Shown piece after piece: positions 40,513 through 49,420 of a stretch of 64,000 nt of DNA (position 1 is its first letter; each line of letters starts with the position of its first letter). A program made the translations under genes and the position numbers. Below the pieces are notes generated by a model, which was not told where the DNA came from, ran no database searches, and saw nothing but the letters and a program-made list of their open reading frames with translations. The stretch comes from Obrimoposthia wandeli (Eukaryota): positions 124,001 through 188,000 of the forward strand of contig CDROCS010001028.1 of assembly GCA_977020255.1 (NCBI GenBank), written 5' to 3'.

Positions 40513-42897
40513 TTATTTAATGTCTATCGTTCGACTCGCTTTACGATACAGTATTTTCCACCCTTTCCAGCGAGGCAATTCCCAGCGTTTAGGGTCTGCT
40601 TTTCTATTACCTTTAATATAATTAGCGACGACCCTTTTACGATGAATATCGTATTCAATATTCATCACTAAATCATTCAGTTGTACTCGACGTGGATATT
40701 CGGTATCAAAATCTTCCCTTTCCCATTCTGGGATGCCTTCAAAATGAAAGTCGTCCATAGAAAATAATGCCAGATCATCTGACGACTCAATCCCAAGGTC
40801 TTCAATTTGAATAGATAGCCACTTAACAGCATCAACAGGTTCGGGCTTTATGTTGGTGCTGTAGAGCGAGGCATCATATCGCCCCAGTGCTAAATATAAA
40901 TTCCACTGTTGGATATCTGCACTGATCTTTTCTACTAAACCTGAAAGCACATGCCCTTGAAGAATAAAATCGACTAATGTTTCTTTTGCCACATTTCCTT
41001 TAGGTTTTTGCCATTGTCGTTGAATAACCCGCCCTGCATAACGACGTTCAATTTCAACTCGACACTCCCCTTCTACAACGTTACTTTTACCCGCTACCTG
41101 TTCACCCAAGTCTAATGCAATCATCAGATCAAGGCTTATTGGCGTCATACAGGTTGCCAACGCTAATGTTTGTTTACTGCCACGACCAGGCATTGCATAT
41201 TGATCAAAAACGATAGCGGCTTCATCATCATCTGAAAAGCGGCTTTCACGGCCAATACTCACTTCGCTATAGCCATTGCCTAATGCCTGCTTGCGTTTTT
41301 CTCGGCGCACAAACACTAATTCAGGTGCCGCTTCAATTACAGCACTTAACCATTGTTCACGTTTAATTGATGTCGCGACTTCAAGCATCGGTAATTCCAA
41401 TGCTTCACGAATTTGGCTTGATAATTGACGAGCATCTTGAAGCACTTGTCTATCAACATTCAGCGATTCAGGCGCGTCTTCACGTAATATTTTAATCAAT
41501 GTTGTCGCGTCACAATGCTGGGGCTGCCATTGTGCTAATTCTTCTCTGCCCTCTGCGCTTTTAGGAAACTGCCATAAACGCTGAGGAACAGATAACGCAG
41601 CAGACAGATCGATCATGGCTTCTTGGCTCGCTTTATTGGGCATAACTGTAATTAAATGCGCAAAAAGTGTGTCGATAGGTAGCGGAAATAACAATCGCCC
41701 ATGTGCGGTGACTCGCCCTTTTTCATCAATCGCTCTCATATTGCGTAAACGATCAATCGCTTGCTGAGTCGTTTTCTCTGGAAGACTATCAACAAATGCC
41801 AATTCATTGAATTGATAACCACAACACGCAGCGGCTAGCATCGGTTCGACCAGCTCTTCTCGATGTAATTCCGGCGGTGTTAAATATTCTAATGGTGCGG
41901 CTTTACCGTATAACCGAACGCATATGCCTTCGCTTACTCGCCCAGCTCTACCTTTTCGCTGTTCAGAGCTGGCGTTCGAAATAGCATGCAAACCTAATAC
42001 AGTACGACCATTACGCTGATGTGTTCTTCGTTCTAGCCCACTATCAATAATTAAGGTGACACCGGGAATCGTTAACGATGTTTCAGCCACATTAGTGGCG
42101 ACAATTATTCGCTGTTTGTCGCTTTGCGTTAATGCGCGATAGCGTTCATCATCAGAGACTGAGGCATGCAATGGGATAACATCGATTAAACCTAGGCTGA
42201 TTTGCTCTTTAAAATACTGCGCTAATGTCGATACACATTGGCTAATTTCTTTACGACCGGGTAGAAAAATTAAAATATCATCTTGTTCACGATGATATTG
42301 TTCAACCACCTCTTTTATCTTTCGCTCAATACCACGGGCATCTGGCATATCGCGGCTATCATTCGCCTTATAAACAACCTCTACATTATAGGTTCTGCCT
42401 GTCGCTTTAAGATGCTTCGCACCAAGATAGTCAGCCAAACGTTGGCTATCCATCGTTGCTGAGGTTGCAATCAATTGATGCGCATTTTCTTTTTTCAGTA
42501 ACGCCAATAATAAGTCTGTATCCCACCTGCGTTCATGAAATTCATCAATCATAATGGTAGTAAAAGACTGCAGTTTATCTTCTATCATCCAGCGTAAGGC
42601 AACACCGGGAGTAACGAAAACGACTTGGGTATTGTCATCAAAGCGATTATCAAAACGGATGGCATAACCAATTCGCTTACCTAACGTTTCACCATTACTA
42701 GAAGCAACATATTCAGCCAACGCGGTACACGCCACTCGACGAGGTTCAACCACTAAAACACGTCCAGATTCTGCTGCCCATAAAGGCAATCTGGTTGATT
42801 TTCCAGAACCAGTTTCAGCTTCAATAACAAGGTGAGATGTTGGTAAAGCCTTCAAGAAGTCGAGCTTTAGCGAATCAATGGGTAATAGGTTTTGCAT
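40513..42897 (-). CDS. HrpB-like DEAH-box ATP-dependent helicase
   Basis: AETGSGKS, DEFHER, TSAT, ATNVAETSLTIPG and QRKGRAGR motifs. Confidence 0.9.
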   Translation of the reverse strand: MQNLLPIDSLKLDFLKALPTSHLVIEAETGSGKSTRLPLWAAESGRVLVVEPRRVACTALAEYVASSNGETLGKRIGYAIRFDNRFDDNTQVVFVTPGVALRWMIEDKLQSFTTIMIDEFHERRWDTDLLLALLKKENAHQLIATSATMDSQRLADYLGAKHLKATGRTYNVEVVYKANDSRDMPDARGIERKIKEVVEQYHREQDDILIFLPGRKEISQCVSTLAQYFKEQISLGLIDVIPLHASVSDDERYRALTQSDKQRIIVATNVAETSLTIPGVTLIIDSGLERRTHQRNGRTVLGLHAISNASSEQRKGRAGRVSEGICVRLYGKAAPLEYLTPPELHREELVEPMLAAACCGYQFNELAFVDSLPEKTTQQAIDRLRNMRAIDEKGRVTAHGRLLFPLPIDTLFAHLITVMPNKASQEAMIDLSAALSVPQRLWQFPKSAEGREELAQWQPQHCDATTLIKILREDAPESLNVDRQVLQDARQLSSQIREALELPMLEVATSIKREQWLSAVIEAAPELVFVRREKRKQALGNGYSEVSIGRESRFSDDDEAAIVFDQYAMPGRGSKQTLALATCMTPISLDLMIALDLGEQVAGKSNVVEGECRVEIERRYAGRVIQRQWQKPKGNVAKETLVDFILQGHVLSGLVEKISADIQQWNLYLALGRYDASLYSTNIKPEPVDAVKWLSIQIEDLGIESSDDLALFSMDDFHFEGIPEWEREDFDTEYPRRVQLNDLVMNIEYDIHRKRVVANYIKGNRKADPKRWELPRWKGWKILYRKASRTIDIK

Positions 42898-43537: not shown

Positions 43538-44737
43538 TTAAATCAATGTCGTTAATACTTGAGGATTATTATGTAATGTTCGATGAACTGGGCAGCGATC
43601 AGCTATTTCCATTAGTCTTGCTTTATCTGAATCTTTCATAGGCCCAAATAACTGAACTTTACGAATCAATGACTCTATTTTCGGATCTTGTTCTGAGACA
43701 TTGGCTGCATCGGCTAAATAATTACGTTCGTGAGATAAGAATACTTCCACATGCTCTAGAGGAATTTTTTTGTGGTCAGCATACATGCGAATTGTCATCG
43801 CTGTGCAGGCACCTAAAGCAGCAAGTAAGTGCTCGTAGGGATCTGGACCTGAATTTTTTCCACCTACTTGTGTTGGTTCATCTGCATACCAGTGATGGTG
43901 GTCACTAAATACTTCCTGCTGAAACTTATGATCAAGCTCTGCCACTAAAACATGTCCTTTTGTTATTTTTGGATTAGATATTTCGGGCGTTGGAATATAT
44001 CGACTTGCCCATCCAGAAATCGTTTGTGCGACATACTCACTATCTATTGATTTTGATAAAAGATGATCCGCAGTGTCTAGGCTAACAAAACTTTTAGGGT
44101 GCTTAGCCGCTTTATAGATTTTCTCCGCATCGGAAATATCAACAGTTAAATCGATAGGTGAATGCAGTACAAGCAAAGCCTTATTAAGGTGCTGTATATG
44201 TTCTGTCGTTTGATTACGTAAATCGTCTATAAATTGTTTTTTAATCGTAAACTCACGCGTACCTAAGCTCACTCTCGCCTGACCACTTTTTTCTATGGTA
44301 TCAAGGTGAGCATCAAAGTTGTGTATTACATGGCTTGCTTCATACGGAGCTGCAATTGTCACTATCGCTTTCACCTCTGGAAGTTGTGCCGCCATCGCTA
44401 AAACGGCAGCGCCACCGAGGCTATGTCCAATCAATAATTGAGGCGCTTGGTAATGCAACTCAAGAAACTTTGCAGCTGCCATTAAATCTTCTGTATTGGA
44501 TGAAAAATTTGTATTGGCAAAGTCGCCATCGCTATTTCCCAAGCCAGTGAAGTCAAATCGAAAAACAGCAAAGCCATGTTGTACAAGAAATCGACTAATT
44601 CGCGAAGCCGCTGCAACATCTTTACCACAGGTAAAACAATGGGCAAACAGTACATAGGCTCGTATAGTTTGATCTGGTGTTTCTAGCAAACCAGCCAGAT
44701 TTTGCCCTTGGCTAGGAAATTCTACTTTAGTTCTCAT
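43538..44737 (-). CDS. Bifunctional alpha/beta hydrolase - OsmC family protein
   Basis: [16 protein letters not shown] nucleophile elbow and ADHLL; C-terminal OsmC domain ([23 protein letters not shown]); start MRTKVEF at 44737. Confidence 0.9.
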
Positions 44738-44847
44738 CGATTCTATCCTCAGTTTGTAATAAAACCTCAGGTAAAAATATCGCTCAAGGTTTACTTGTTT
44801 AATCAAAAGCAGCTAGCTGTACTTTGTTGTGCCTGTAATTATTACGG

Positions 44848-45261
44848 CTAAGCAAGTAATAAAGGCTCAATAACTGCCTGCCACTGAGCTAAGCTTGATT
44901 CGTGATCAACTGGAACCTTATCGGCATTGTTGATAAATAAAGTCGGGGTTGCCCAAACGGCCTTAGTTGCTGCGTAGCGAATGGGTGTACGTGCTTGAAC
45001 GTATATATCGCGATCACTCATTCTGTTAAAGAATTTCCCACGATCTGCTAATGCGAATAGTCCCAAGCTCATATCCCAAGCTTGTCGGTGGTTACTGAGG
45101 GTAATCAAATGAACCCTTAGGCTGACGGATTTACCCTGGTAATATTCTGATACTTGCAGCGAATGTGGGCATTGAATATCAATAAATGCATCAATAGTAA
45201 TTTGGGCTGCTGCATCACCGAGAAGAAAACCGCTCGAACGGTGTGGTATAGGTATAGCCAT
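44848..45261 (-). CDS. Thioredoxin/DsbA-fold protein, possibly internally deleted
   Basis: GFLLGDAAAQITIDAFIDIQCPHS (CxxS) and VWATPTLFIN; short for this fold. Confidence 0.65.
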   Translation of the reverse strand: MAIPIPHRSSGFLLGDAAAQITIDAFIDIQCPHSLQVSEYYQGKSVSLRVHLITLSNHRQAWDMSLGLFALADRGKFFNRMSDRDIYVQARTPIRYAATKAVWATPTLFINNADKVPVDHESSLAQWQAVIEPLLLA

Positions 45262-45340
45262 ATGAAGTACTGTCCCTTTCTTACTGTAGATTAATTACTT
45301 TCGATGAATGATTATAGTGGTATTGATTGAATGACTATTT

Positions 45341-45880
45341 TCATTCTAAGCATAAAGCGATCTTTTCATCATTAACCTGATGCTTGAAACGTGTTAATAA
45401 CAGTCTCAATTTTGGATGAATATACGTTTTACAAAAGGGTTTATTAGGTGAATTATATAAGTAATTCTGTAATTCATCCTTATTCGCCTTAAACGAATAA
45501 AATGGCAGTACCTGCGTGATAATTGGTTTATCAAAATCACTTTGTAAGGAGTCTAAAACTTTGTAGGCTTCTTGGTTTTGAGCATCGTTATAGGTATATA
45601 TTGCCGACCGGTATTTTTTCCGCATGGAGTGATTAGCTGTGGATGCATGAGTATGTAAATGAATTTCGATCAATATCTGCAAACTAATCAGAGATTGATC
45701 AAAATATACTTCAATAGCTTCAGATAATTCAGCATTATTGTCGCTTGAAGCGATCCACCCTTGATTCACCACTTTGATACCGATAAGCGACTCGAAAACG
45801 CCTTCGGTACACCAATGGCAACCACCACCTAAACCAATCTTGCTGAAGTTTTCATTATGCATAGTGTTCTCTCTAGTCAC
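45341..45880 (-). CDS. msrA: Peptide methionine sulfoxide reductase A, atypical paralog
   Basis: GGGCHWCTEGVF, EAIEVYFD, YRSAIY and PFCKTYI motifs. Confidence 0.8.
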   Translation of the reverse strand: MTRENTMHNENFSKIGLGGGCHWCTEGVFESLIGIKVVNQGWIASSDNNAELSEAIEVYFDQSLISLQILIEIHLHTHASTANHSMRKKYRSAIYTYNDAQNQEAYKVLDSLQSDFDKPIITQVLPFYSFKANKDELQNYLYNSPNKPFCKTYIHPKLRLLLTRFKHQVNDEKIALCLE

Positions 45881-45902
45881 TATTGAAGTTACTTTTATTA
45901 GC

Positions 45903-46403
45903 TCATTTTACTGAAGGTAATACCCAGTCACGCCGAGGAAAGTGGCAAGTATAACCATTAGGTATTCTTTGCAGATAATCTTGATGTTCTACTTCTGCTT
46001 CCCAAAAATCGCCTGCAAGTGCCAATTCAGTAACCACAGTCCCAGGCCATAAACCTGATGCATTAACATCGGCGATCGTTTGCATTGCTACAGCATATTG
46101 TTCAGCTGAACAATAATAAATCGCTGAACGATATGATGAGCCTTGGTCATTTCCTTGTTGGTTTTTTGTTGTTGGATCATGGATCTGAAAGAACAATTCA
46201 AGAATACTGCGGAAACTAACAACATCAGTATTGAATGATATTTCTATTCCTTCAGCATGATTGCCATGATTACGATAAGTTGCGTTAATAACGTCACCAC
46301 CAGTATAACCAACTCGGGTTGACGTGACTCCGGGAAGTTTGCGTATAAGATCTTGCATGCCCCAGAAGCATCCACCAGCCAAAAGAGCACGTTCAATTTT
46401 CAT
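45903..46403 (-). CDS. msrA: Peptide methionine sulfoxide reductase A
   Basis: [32 protein letters not shown] and AEVEHQDY...GYTCH motifs. Confidence 0.95.
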
Positions 46404-46405
46404 AT

Positions 46406-46852
46406 TTATATCTTCTCCACTTGATTAACATATTCGCCATAACCATTAGTGACCATATCATCACGGTGGATAAAACGAAGAGAAGCTGAATTAATACAAT
46501 AACGTAAACCACCTTCACTTTTTGGACCATCGTTAAATACATGTCCTAAATGACTGTCCCCATAACCTGAGCGAACTTCAGTTCGAATCATACCGTGACC
46601 GTTATCATTAATTTCTTTGATATTTTTCGACTCAATCGGTTTGGTAAAACTTGGCCAACCACAGCCAGATTCAAATTTATCTGAAGAAGCAAATAGTGGC
46701 TCACCTGAAACAATGTCGACATAAATGCCCGGCAGAGTATTATTAAGATGCTCTCCACTACCTGGTCGCTCTGTGCCACTTTCTTGAGTTACACGATATT
46801 GTTCTTTGGTTAGTGCTGAAATTGCATCTGCGGATTTTTGATATGTTGTCAT
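46406..46852 (-). CDS. msrB: Methionine-R-sulfoxide reductase
   Basis: [27 protein letters not shown] and RYCINSASL; start MTTYQKS at 46852. Confidence 0.95.
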
Positions 46853-46901
46853 AATTTTCTGTCCTCGGCATTTTGTCACCTTTTAGAGTGACACGCTGAT
46901 A

Positions 46902-46927
46902 TGATCTACCCCCGATAAAACGGACAC
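46902..46927 (+). mobile_element. Solitary IS3-family-like terminal inverted repeat, no transposase
   Basis: TGATCTACCCCCGATAAAACGGACAC resembles IS3-type ends (TGATCT..CCC......GGACAC); no partner end or transposase ORF was seen nearby. Confidence 0.5.
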
Positions 46928-47101
46928 ATATACTTTCAGGCTACTATGCTTCATATTCTATTGGAGAATATCAGCTCTATTTCAACGGCAGTTACTCACT
47001 AAGCCACTTAGCACCGGAGGCTAAAAAGTTGCACAACAAAGAGCATTCGGCGCAACCTTGAAACATCCCAGTGCATTGGCAATGTTATGTATTGAAATAC
47101 C

Positions 47102-47668
47102 CTATTGAGAATTCAGTGTCGGATAAGCTTCAGTGTATATCCAGTCTTTATCTTTAGCTGGCACATGGCAACTTAGGCAATCCGTTTTATAGTCAGTTGC
47201 AACGTTCTTGGCTTTATTATCTGGCTTGTATAAAGCCCAACCCCAGCCATCCCCCCACAAAGGATTATTGGTAAACCGGCCTTTCACATCTTTGACCATG
47301 ACGAACCATTGTTTAATGTCACTCGTGGCATAATTGACACCTTCCCCTGTAGTATAGCTACCCGATTTAGATGCCCTAAGCTCTTTAACCAGTACTGCAC
47401 CGTCAGGGAATTTACCCGTTTTACGAAACGCCTCTACAGATTCTTTCTCAGTGTATACATCATGAAAACCACTGGCGCCACCAGAAGGCACAAACCATGA
47501 ACCTAAATGAACCATATTAGTTCGAAAGTTTAAGGGAAAACTAATATTGCCATTGCTGTCAACATAAGGAGAAAATGTATCATCTGCCATTACCGAAAAT
47601 GAACCTACACCAAGAATGACAACACAAGCTATGCTTCTCCCTAATTTTTTTAATCGAATGTATATCAT
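47102..47668 (-). CDS. Cytochrome P460-family protein B
   Basis: Signal peptide, FPDGAVLVKEL, WFVMVKD, WGWALY and a C-terminal CLSCH heme motif. Confidence 0.85.
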   Translation of the reverse strand: MIYIRLKKLGRSIACVVILGVGSFSVMADDTFSPYVDSNGNISFPLNFRTNMVHLGSWFVPSGGASGFHDVYTEKESVEAFRKTGKFPDGAVLVKELRASKSGSYTTGEGVNYATSDIKQWFVMVKDVKGRFTNNPLWGDGWGWALYKPDNKAKNVATDYKTDCLSCHVPAKDKDWIYTEAYPTLNSQ

Positions 47669-47670
47669 TA

Positions 47671-48300
47671 TTAATTACCTTTTGGCTCAACATAGTTATT
47701 ATTCAAGTCAGATTCATGACCGCCTGTAGCACTTTTCCCCTTTGCTTTACCTGCACTAAGAACTGGGTAATACTGAGTGAAAACAAAGTCATCTGCCGCA
47801 GCTCCTGCATGACATGAATTACAAGACGTTGTAGGAAATGCTTTTGCTGTTTTTGACAATGTTTTATGATCCGCACTTGAAAAACTAAAGTATGCCCAAT
47901 TACCAGGCTCATTTTCAAAATGCTTCTTGCTTTTTATTGTAGCTTCTAGGCCAACAAATTCGCCCATAAAATAGCCTTTACCGCTAACAGCCGATTTTGA
48001 ACCCACAGAAACAAGTTCTTTAATCAGGATAGTACCATCACGAAATTTACCGGTGTCTTTCCAATGCTTCCAGCTTTTAGGGTCAATATAGACATTATGC
48101 ATTTCAGGAAATGCCGCTTTTCCACCATTCATGTCATTGGGGGTAACGGGTGTTCCAATGTAGATCCACTCTCGATAACCAGTAGGACGTTCAAGCTCAC
48201 CATTTTTCATTGAAAACGCTTCATTTGCATGAGTGATCCCTGAAAAAATGACTTGCACAAACAGGAACGATATTGCTATTAATACTTTATTAATTTTCAT
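47671..48300 (-). CDS. Cytochrome P460-family protein A
   Basis: Signal peptide, HNVYIDP, FRDGTILIKELVSVG, GYFMGEFVGLEATIK, EPGNWAYF and CNSCH motifs. Confidence 0.9.
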   Translation of the reverse strand: MKINKVLIAISFLFVQVIFSGITHANEAFSMKNGELERPTGYREWIYIGTPVTPNDMNGGKAAFPEMHNVYIDPKSWKHWKDTGKFRDGTILIKELVSVGSKSAVSGKGYFMGEFVGLEATIKSKKHFENEPGNWAYFSFSSADHKTLSKTAKAFPTTSCNSCHAGAAADDFVFTQYYPVLSAGKAKGKSATGGHESDLNNNYVEPKGN

Positions 48301-48478
48301 AACATACTCTGTTTTATTTATGAAATTTAACTATAGATGAGTAAATTTGATTTGCTGTATTCACAATACTCAAAAATGTCACTGACCTACTCAAAGTTTC
48401 TATATCAACATTTTAATGCTGCTTTATTTTATTAATTTTAACTATAGTAATGATGTCTATTGAAGCTTAAGGAATGTA

Positions 48479-49420
48479 ATGCTCAAAAATGTCGCTCATC
48501 AACTCAAATGTCCTACATCAGAATTTAATGTACTTGATGATGTCATTGATACTCTTCGCTTTCGTGGCAGTATATTCTTTCATTCAAGCCTTGCTGCACC
48601 GTGGGGTGTGTCGTATTCATCTTGCCTAATGCCTAGATTCCATGTTGCATTAGAAGGTGGGTTTTATGTAGGTGTTGATGCAAATACGATTAATTTAAAA
48701 CAGATGGATATTGCTATGATCCCCCATGGAGAAAAGCATTGGATAGCTGATAATGTAAATAGTCAACTAATAGCTAGTGAACGCGCGAGAGATATTTGTG
48801 CGTTAGGTATGCCACTTTTTCAACAAGGTGAAATCACTAATAAAATTATGTGTGGAATAGTTGAGTATGATGAGGCTATTAAGCATCCTATTCTCAGTGC
48901 TTTGCCTTCCATAATTCAACTTTCTAATATCGCATCAAATGATACTATTTGGATGACAGTAAAATTAATTGACGCGGAAATAAATAGAGCAAATGGTAAT
49001 AAAAACAGCATAATAGATCGTTTAACCGAAGTCTTATTTATTCAGCTACTCAATAACTTCATCAAGAAAGATGAGCACCTAACAGGCTTCTTATCAGCAC
49101 TTAAAGAACCGCGGTTAAATAAAATATTACAGCTCATTCATCAGAATCCTGAAAGACAATGGACTCTAGATATTATTAGTGATGCTGTCGGTATGTCTCG
49201 GGCTACACTGCAGCGTAAGTTTAAAGCTAACATAGGTGTATCTCCTATGGTTTATATTAGTCGTTGGCGTATGGCAAAAGCTTATCAGTTATTAAAATAT
49301 TCCAATTTATCTCTTGAAGGAATTGCTGATGGTATTGGGTTTTCAAACGCGCGTACACTTTCGCATGCATTCAAAGATTATTATGGGGATACACCGAGTC
49401 AATTCCGTAAGAAATTATAA
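48479..49420 (+). CDS. AraC-family regulator with an N-terminal cupin, RclR-like
   Basis: LAAPWG, RFHVALEG, IMCG, IIDRLTEVLFIQLL and WTLDIISDAVGMSRATL motifs; divergent from the P460 genes. Confidence 0.85.
   Translation: MLKNVAHQLKCPTSEFNVLDDVIDTLRFRGSIFFHSSLAAPWGVSYSSCLMPRFHVALEGGFYVGVDANTINLKQMDIAMIPHGEKHWIADNVNSQLIASERARDICALGMPLFQQGEITNKIMCGIVEYDEAIKHPILSALPSIIQLSNIASNDTIWMTVKLIDAEINRANGNKNSIIDRLTEVLFIQLLNNFIKKDEHLTGFLSALKEPRLNKILQLIHQNPERQWTLDIISDAVGMSRATLQRKFKANIGVSPMVYISRWRMAKAYQLLKYSNLSLEGIADGIGFSNARTLSHAFKDYYGDTPSQFRKKL

Follow-up and report, generated by a model that had tools for sequence, protein, structure and literature searches.

The DNA stretch considered here (the window) comprises 64,000 nt of the genome assembly of Obrimoposthia wandeli (GCA_977020255.1, contig CDROCS010001028.1, positions 124,001 to 188,000 of the forward strand), and contains a cluster of eight open reading frames (ORFs) that includes two adjacent cytochrome P460 genes, P460-A and P460-B. 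Seven of the ORFs are on the minus strand: the P460 pair, the methionine sulfoxide reductase (Msr) genes msrB and msrA, an atypical msrA-like gene (msrA2), a thioredoxin-fold gene, and a hydrolase-OsmC fusion. The eighth, on the plus strand, encodes a cupin-AraC regulator and diverges from P460-A (Table 1). Pfam and NCBIfam support each of them, bearing out the gene set and divergent layout proposed in a first-pass annotation of the window made from the letters alone.

The contig itself is bacterial and Colwellia-like. It lies in a 1.35-Gb assembly of 6912 contigs, and probably represents an associated or contaminating bacterium within a eukaryote assembly. DNA of the cluster is 79–89% identical to Colwellia genomes at the nucleotide level, with the P460 pair alone 83% identical to Moritella, and near-identical DNA is found in sediment, marine, sea-ice, invertebrate-gut, and food metagenomes. 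Together these matches point to a free-living Colwellia-like marine psychrophile as the organism. The earlier idea that the cluster is directed against host antimicrobial oxidants is unsupported; the module is found in bacteria from sediment, seawater, and sea ice, with no tie to a host.

Table 1. Features of the P460 cluster, with positions in the window and bit scores against family cut-offs.
Feature	Position	Strand	Details
Alpha/beta-hydrolase + OsmC fusion	43538-44806	-	OsmC (PF02566) 63.5 bits vs 27.5; Hydrolase_4 58.6 bits
DsbA-like thioredoxin-fold remnant	44848-45261	-	137 aa; Thioredoxin_4 (PF13462), profile positions 87-164 only
Atypical MsrA-like gene (msrA2)	45341-45880	-	179 aa; GCHWC, not GCFWG; 22 bp after msrA
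msrA	45903-46403	-	166 aa; GCFWG; TIGR00401 155.2 bits vs 108; 2 bp after msrB
msrB (ORF)	46406-46879	-	TIGR00357 190.8 bits vs cut-off 113
P460-B-msrB spacer	46853-47101	-	249 bp
P460-B	47102-47668	-	188 aa; PF16694 98 bits; 2 bp after P460-A
P460-A	47671-48300	-	209 aa; PF16694 101.3 bits vs cut-off 27
Divergent promoter region	48301-48478	.	178 bp vs ~70 bp in other Colwellia loci
Cupin_6 + HTH_18 AraC-family regulator	48479-49420	+	313 aa; divergent from P460-A

The P460 pair and its divergent regulator

P460-A has an N-terminal signal-peptide-like sequence (recognized by eye) and the heme motif CNSCH, and matches the Nitrosomonas europaea P460 structures 2je2 and 8gar with an E value of 1e-58 (phmmer) and about 60% identity. 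Residues K94, E119, C160, C163, and H164 are invariant in the ortholog alignment, and at least 90% kept among 79 orthologues. K94 aligns with the cross-link Lys (Lys70 in N. europaea, in a KELV motif), the cross-link here being predicted from the alignment, and E119 (GLEAT motif) shares its column with the Glu found in 2je2 and in the A131E variant 6e17. This is the distal second-sphere Glu of the class that oxidizes hydroxylamine (NH2OH), corresponding to Glu97 in N. europaea and position 131 in Nitrosomonas sp. AL212, and it is indispensable for NH2OH oxidation by cytochrome P460 (PMC6457333). Judged by alignment, P460-A has the full set of residues that this reaction is known to require (CXXCH, cross-link Lys, distal Glu).

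P460-B, 89% identical to a Moritella dasanensis protein, likewise has a signal-peptide-like N-terminus (by eye), a CXXCH motif (CLSCH), and the cross-link Lys (in KELR). In the distal-Glu column, however, alignment to 8gar and 2je2 places a Phe (KQWFVM motif), which is kept in 56 orthologues and sets P460-B apart from the NH2OH-oxidizing class. The difference in distal residues between the two proteins is real and conserved in both sets of orthologues, and the genes for the Glu-type and Phe-type P460 are conserved as a pair. Classes of P460 with Glu, Ala, and Phe have been distinguished, P460 genes also occur in non-nitrifiers, and the function of the non-Glu types has been called "mysterious" (PMC6457333). 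Instead of oxidizing NH2OH, P460-B probably binds a ligand (nitric oxide, NO, or NH2OH) or serves as a redox partner.

Both members of the pair have counterparts in nitrifiers. P460-A resembles CytL of N. europaea (PDB 2JE2, 2JE3, 8GAR) in sequence, in its predicted periplasmic location, and in its CXXCH, cross-link Lys, and distal Glu. Unlike CytL, it comes from a presumed heterotroph, whose closest sequenced relatives (two Colwellia and one Moritella) showed no AmoA match. A second P460 accompanies it, an AraC regulator faces it, and Msr and thiol-repair genes are linked to it, a context not found described for CytL. P460-B is like the P460 of Nitrosomonas sp. AL212 (6AMG), which is incompetent for NH2OH oxidation, in keeping the Lys and CXXCH without the distal Glu, but it has Phe in KQWFVM, shares only about 28% identity with P460-A-type proteins, and always directly follows a Glu-type P460. 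Three more, weaker Cytochrome_P460 matches are found on contigs C2469, C6241, and C4997 of the same assembly, and may belong to other bacteria.

The regulator scores 98.5 bits for Cupin_6 and 77.8 bits for HTH_18. Its best NCBIfam match is RclR (NF040475), the E. coli member of which senses through Cys21 and Cys89 (PMC7464077), but with 78.9 bits against a cut-off of 400, and over residues 113–312 only. The xxCG cysteine noted in the first-pass annotation (IMCG, C125) is indeed kept: it aligns with RclR Cys89 and is found in all of 46 orthologues. A second cysteine, C107, is 96% conserved and sits in a region missing from RclR, and His55, His87, and His136 are invariant as well. RclR Cys21 aligns with Ser36, a Ser in 43 of the 46 sequences, so of the Cys21–Cys89 redox pair only the Cys89 equivalent is shared. 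The description "RclR-like" therefore holds for the cupin-AraC architecture, the Cys89 equivalent, and RclR as the best named family, but not for the score, which is far below the cut-off, or for Cys21. An RclR orthologue was considered and is ruled out by the same score and the Ser at the Cys21 position.

The arrangement is otherwise like that of RclR-RclABC in having a Cupin_6-AraC protein divergent from adjacent genes, with candidate targets that span the periplasm, the membrane (cytochrome b561 in Colwellia), and cytoplasmic redox enzymes. The target genes themselves are wholly different, and no rclA, rclB, or rclC was found in the window in Pfam and NCBIfam scans. A thiol switch in the regulator is plausible from its conserved cysteines, with C107 as a second Cys different from that of RclR. 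A sequence search of the PDB for solved relatives of the sensor domain returned only generic AraC DNA-binding domains, such as those of Rns and MarA.

The region between the regulator and P460-A owes its length to an insertion of about 110 bp, which duplicates the promoter-proximal CTATAGTT element located about 38 nt before the P460-A start. The insertion is also present in metagenome contig L106; other Colwellia loci are compact. In Colwellia-type loci the sequence CTATAG is found about 38 nt before the P460-A ATG, and is a putative -10 element. Intergenic regions were extracted from 118 loci, of which 109 are distinct, and no convincing operator motif common to all 109 was found beyond lineage-specific elements.

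Conservation of the core and the genes attached to it

Related loci were collected in two ways. In the first, based on a P460-A alignment with one genome per species, the best 80 loci of 439 confirmed relatives were examined and their neighbors scored by tblastn and ORF clustering. A cupin-AraC regulator is divergent upstream of P460-A in about 55 of the 80, and a LysR or other AraC protein takes its place in 14 more. A P460-B-type gene directly follows P460-A in 56, including Nitrosomonadaceae and Methyloprofundus; in another nine the gene after P460-A encodes a more diverged P460 ("P460-C"), followed in Colwellia by cytochrome b561. Adjacent msrA and/or msrB genes are found at 16 loci, which span Colwellia, Thiotrichaceae, Alcanivoracaceae, Sedimenticola, Woeseiaceae, and unclassified Gammaproteobacteria. 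The second, independent scan was anchored on an alignment of the regulator and covered 80 metagenome contigs, counting for each gene only the contigs with enough flanking sequence. P460-A is divergently adjacent in 50 of 54, a second P460 is present in 42 of 48, and Msr genes in 19 of 33. Absence of linkage in other genomes, named in the first-pass annotation as a ground for refutation, is not what is found: the regulator-P460 pair is nearly always together, and msrBA is beside it far more often than by chance. The arrangement as a whole is more than coincidence, as it turns up dozens of times, in unrelated genomes and on metagenome contigs.

Gene orders vary around this core. Three metagenome contigs (L092, L093, and L106) match the window from the regulator to msrA2, and two of these (L092 and L106) also have the DsbA-like and hydrolase-OsmC genes. 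The order in C. psychrerythraea 34H (L183, CP000083.1 3195596–3210096) is regulator, P460-A, P460-C, cytochrome b561, msrB, msrA, and msrA-like, with 53 bp before msrB. In one case (L139) the regulator faces a DUF302-msrB-msrA-msrA2 series without any P460, and msr-P460 linkage also occurs where LysR replaces AraC. The gap before msrB is at most 53 bp in most lineages, and 222–249 bp only in the lineage of the window; because of these short gaps and the common strand, the msr genes appear to be operonic in most lineages. That two unrelated Msr types occur, in at least four gene orders, suggests repeated and independent recruitment.

In the window, msrB most likely begins at the ATG at 46852 rather than the GTG at 46879, since orthologues have 148–151 aa and this start gives 148 aa. 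The gap between P460-B and msrB, first read as 220 bp, is corrected to 249 bp with this start. The MsrA-like protein exceeds the Pfam PMSR cut-off (78.5 vs 23.7 bits) and falls short of that for TIGR00401 (64.2 vs 108). An msrA-like gene also follows msrA in the Colwellia loci and in L032, L074, L120, L139, L148, L166, and L181. Colwellia genomes hold separate housekeeping msrA and msrB genes elsewhere, so that the P460-linked copies are extra paralogues; the window MsrA shares 69–77% identity with P460-linked MsrA of other families, against 39% with the Colwellia housekeeping MsrA. The window MsrB and MsrA resemble the two halves of MsrBA fusion proteins (NF004042, 146 and 182 bits). As with MsrPQ under HprSR, methionine sulfoxide repair would here be under oxidant-responsive control, but by separate cytoplasmic enzymes without signal peptides rather than the molybdoenzyme MsrP, and with an AraC protein as the putative regulator rather than a two-component system.

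The spacer between P460-B and msrB is predicted to fold strongly (-72.4 kcal/mol, z = -2.1), and no intrinsic terminator was called on its minus strand. Within it lies a repeat of about 67 bp (46902–46968) that matches at least five places on four Colwellia hornerae contigs at 77–85%; a search of the window's own assembly returned only the self-match. Given its position in a strongly folded region, the repeat may be a repetitive extragenic palindromic (REP) or miniature inverted-repeat transposable element (MITE)-like sequence. The spacer is 82–86% conserved in L092, L093, and L106. A cytochrome b561 remnant was looked for in it, and none was found.

The last two genes of the cluster are also found at related loci. 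The thioredoxin-fold gene is present where the first-pass annotation placed it, but as a deletion remnant with a partial profile match. Compared with a 192-aa C. hornerae homologue, to which it is 61% identical (BLASTP), it lacks two in-frame segments of 7 and 48 aa, which suggests a copy in decay. Its active site is CPHS instead of CxxC, as it is in the full-length C. hornerae homologue. Full-length DsbA-like homologues directly follow P460-B in L125, L134, and L136. The hydrolase-OsmC protein has a GHSLGG motif and two OsmC-domain cysteines (GACTAM and DRCPVH) visible in its translation. It probably starts at Met24 (about 44737), since the Colwellia orthologues have 401 aa. It is 86–99% identical in Colwellia and metagenome loci, and occupies the same position in L006, L092, and L106.

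A census of neighbors across 162 loci gave DUF302, DsbA-like CPHS, UDG-superfamily glycosylase, hydrolase-OsmC, glutathione reductase, and AhpD/CMD proteins as the next most frequent after those above. The flavoprotein among them is a glutathione reductase (644 bits for Gor, cut-off 480) and not RclA (200 vs 740). Nitric oxide detoxification genes (such as hmp, nor, or hcp) did not recur among the neighbors at these loci. In metagenome-assembled genomes of Nitrosomonadaceae (L076:10209–11402 and L080), P460-A and P460-B are followed by a glutaredoxin/thioredoxin-reductase (AhpF-like) fusion, and there is no AraC regulator. Going by the families assigned to them, the common theme of the neighbors is protein, thiol, and DNA repair.

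A UDG-superfamily DNA glycosylase adjoins the regulator or P460 genes at seven loci (L050:7292–7918, L057, L074, and others). This may hint that base damage (deamination or halogenation) belongs to the same stress.

Possible roles of the module

The interpretation preferred here, although its chances are put no better than even, is a modular stress system in which a cysteine-bearing cupin-AraC protein controls a periplasmic pair of Glu-type and Phe-type P460s, and to which different lineages have repeatedly attached genes for methionine sulfoxide and thiol repair. That the window holds the Colwellia-lineage version of such a widespread module is an equally balanced judgement. The core would consist of the two-Cys (C107, C125) Cupin_6-AraC regulator divergent from the P460 pair, which would be translationally coupled. 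Accessory genes would be docked lineage by lineage, most often an msrB-msrA(-msrA-like) cassette, but also glutathione reductase, the glutaredoxin/thioredoxin-reductase fusion, DsbA-like, AhpD/CMD, hydrolase-OsmC, DUF302, or UDG glycosylase genes. A small reactive oxidant, either a hydroxylamine- or NO-derived species or a haloamine or hypohalous acid, would oxidize the regulator cysteines, and the activated regulator would then turn on the P460 genes, together with the downstream repair genes where these are operonic. In the periplasm the P460 pair would clear reactive nitrogen species; in the cytoplasm, Msr and thiol enzymes would mend oxidized methionine and cysteine residues. As candidate inducers, hydroxylamine- and NO-derived oxidants fit the known chemistry of P460, and halogen oxidants fit the resemblance to RclR and the theme of methionine repair.

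A stronger form of this proposal is that the regulator, P460-A, and P460-B make up a widespread, so far unrecognized sensor-effector system directed at a reactive nitrogen or halogen oxidant, with a C107–C125 switch and the two P460s possibly forming a heterodimer that destroys the oxidant in the periplasm. This is put forward tentatively, as possible but rather doubtful.

Several observations weigh against the modular stress system or against parts of it. About 80% of the P460-A genome loci have no Msr gene nearby, and in the window the spacer with its repeat parts msrB from P460-B. Contigs from RNA libraries (three sediment metatranscriptome runs) cover msrA2/msrA, msrB, the 3' end of P460-B, and araC; none of them bridges the spacer, although such contigs cannot show single transcripts and may include DNA carried over. 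The regulator is only about 20% identical to E. coli RclR in addition to lacking Cys21, and its AlphaFold model has a mean confidence (pLDDT, predicted local distance difference test) of 68.9, falling below 50 at residues 107–119, so the C107–C125 distance cannot be judged from it. The absence of AmoA matches in five carrier genomes (including two Colwellia and one Moritella) would favor the stress system, but that search had no positive control. Lastly, in all seven non-Colwellia genomes sampled in an Msr-anchored comparison, an MsrA 77–80% identical to that of the window sits without P460. Most of these are in plain msrB-msrA pairs, with two lacking an adjacent msrB and one in an msrB-msrA-msrA-like triple. 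The msr genes are for this reason better regarded as a common portable cassette, often docked on the P460 core, than as its dedicated partner. A dedicated Msr clade that travels with the P460 module had been considered, and is ruled out by these equally close MsrA sequences. The seven-gene unit and the coupling of periplasmic detoxification to cytoplasmic methionine repair envisaged at first thus stand in part: the genes are present, and the core, its regulator, and the msr linkage recur, but as a core with accessory modules, in which msrBA is an addition also found without P460.

The chief alternative is that there are two independent units lying side by side, an AraC-regulated P460 pair and a separately promoted msrB-msrA-msrA2 cassette, brought together by shared islands or insertion hot spots. 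The repeat-bearing spacer, the scarcity of Msr at most P460-A loci, the occurrence of the msrBA(-msrA2) cassette by itself in Primorskyibacter and several metagenome genomes, and the RNA-library contigs, which cover msr genes and not P460-A, are all consistent with this. Chance adjacency, however, is estimated here at about 0.3% for a two-copy family, against 16 of 80 and 19 of 33 found. Operon-like spacing on a common strand in most lineages, recruitment of two unrelated Msr types, a regulator that directly faces msr genes in L139, and the lack of a called terminator in the spacer also speak against two separate units, which are considered unlikely. A narrower version of the stress proposal would have the system defend specifically against reactive halogens (HOCl, HOBr, or haloamines) in the manner of RclR, with sensing by a C107–C125 disulfide and the P460 pair acting on haloamines. 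Haloamines are structural analogues of NH2OH, but to our knowledge no haloamine-active P460 has been described. In its favor, no named NCBIfam family scores higher than RclR, the equivalent of Cys89 never varies, and hmp, nor, and hcp do not recur among the neighbors; methionine is also among the main targets of HOCl and chloramines, and N-chlorotaurine elicits a response from RclR (PMC7464077). Set against these are the distance of the regulator from the RclR cut-off and its missing Cys21, the absence of RclA, RclB, and RclC, with a glutathione reductase as the neighboring flavoprotein, and the lack of any publication found that links P460 to hypochlorite or chloramine. A purely halogen-directed role is distinctly unlikely on this balance. 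The chloramine chemistry suggested in the first-pass annotation would fall within this reading and is speculative.

A role in nitrogen metabolism was also considered, in which the P460 pair oxidizes hydroxylamine made by the host or its neighbors and passes the electrons to the respiratory chain, in Colwellia by way of cytochrome b561. The close similarity of P460-A to the N. europaea enzyme, with all catalytic residues in place, would fit, as would the P460-A/P460-B tandem in Nitrosomonadaceae and Methyloprofundus genomes and the membrane cytochrome b561 after P460-C in Colwellia. The recurrent neighbors, however, are repair and thiol-redox genes rather than nitrogen-cycle genes, with the glutaredoxin/thioredoxin-reductase fusion as the next gene even in the Nitrosomonadaceae loci, and no AmoA was found in the five carrier genomes, with the same reservation as above about a positive control. 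Cytochrome P460 is, moreover, regarded as non-metabolic even in ammonia oxidizers (PMC10411619). A nitrogen-metabolic role is very unlikely by this reckoning, and the further terms it would bring with it, that the AraC protein senses a metabolite and the Msr genes are incidental, are just as improbable.

No published description of the combination was found, in agreement with the first-pass annotation. Among 8.4 million papers and preprints searched, none connected cytochrome P460 to methionine sulfoxide reductase, to a relevant AraC regulator, or to hypochlorite or chloramine, and a 2025 review of the P460 family has no discussion of gene context. The gene families are known singly; the pairing of P460 classes, the dedicated regulator, and the recurrent linkage to repair genes appear to be undescribed. 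The function of P460 outside the ammonia oxidizers is an acknowledged open question, and the conserved layout makes a role testable in culturable carriers such as C. psychrerythraea 34H, Shewanella, and Enterovibrio. If the sensor-effector reading is true, defense against stress would be what P460 primarily does in non-nitrifiers, and the Msr and thiol-repair genes would be natural partners in its regulon. If P460-A does oxidize hydroxylamine released by nitrifiers, there would also be a bearing on marine nitrous oxide (N2O) and NO from heterotrophs.

Downstream of the cluster (40513–42897, minus strand) a gene encodes a DEAH helicase of 794 aa that is related to HrpB and HrpA but scores well under the cut-offs of both, and that also has a weak match to a wHTH-PRTase-associated domain.

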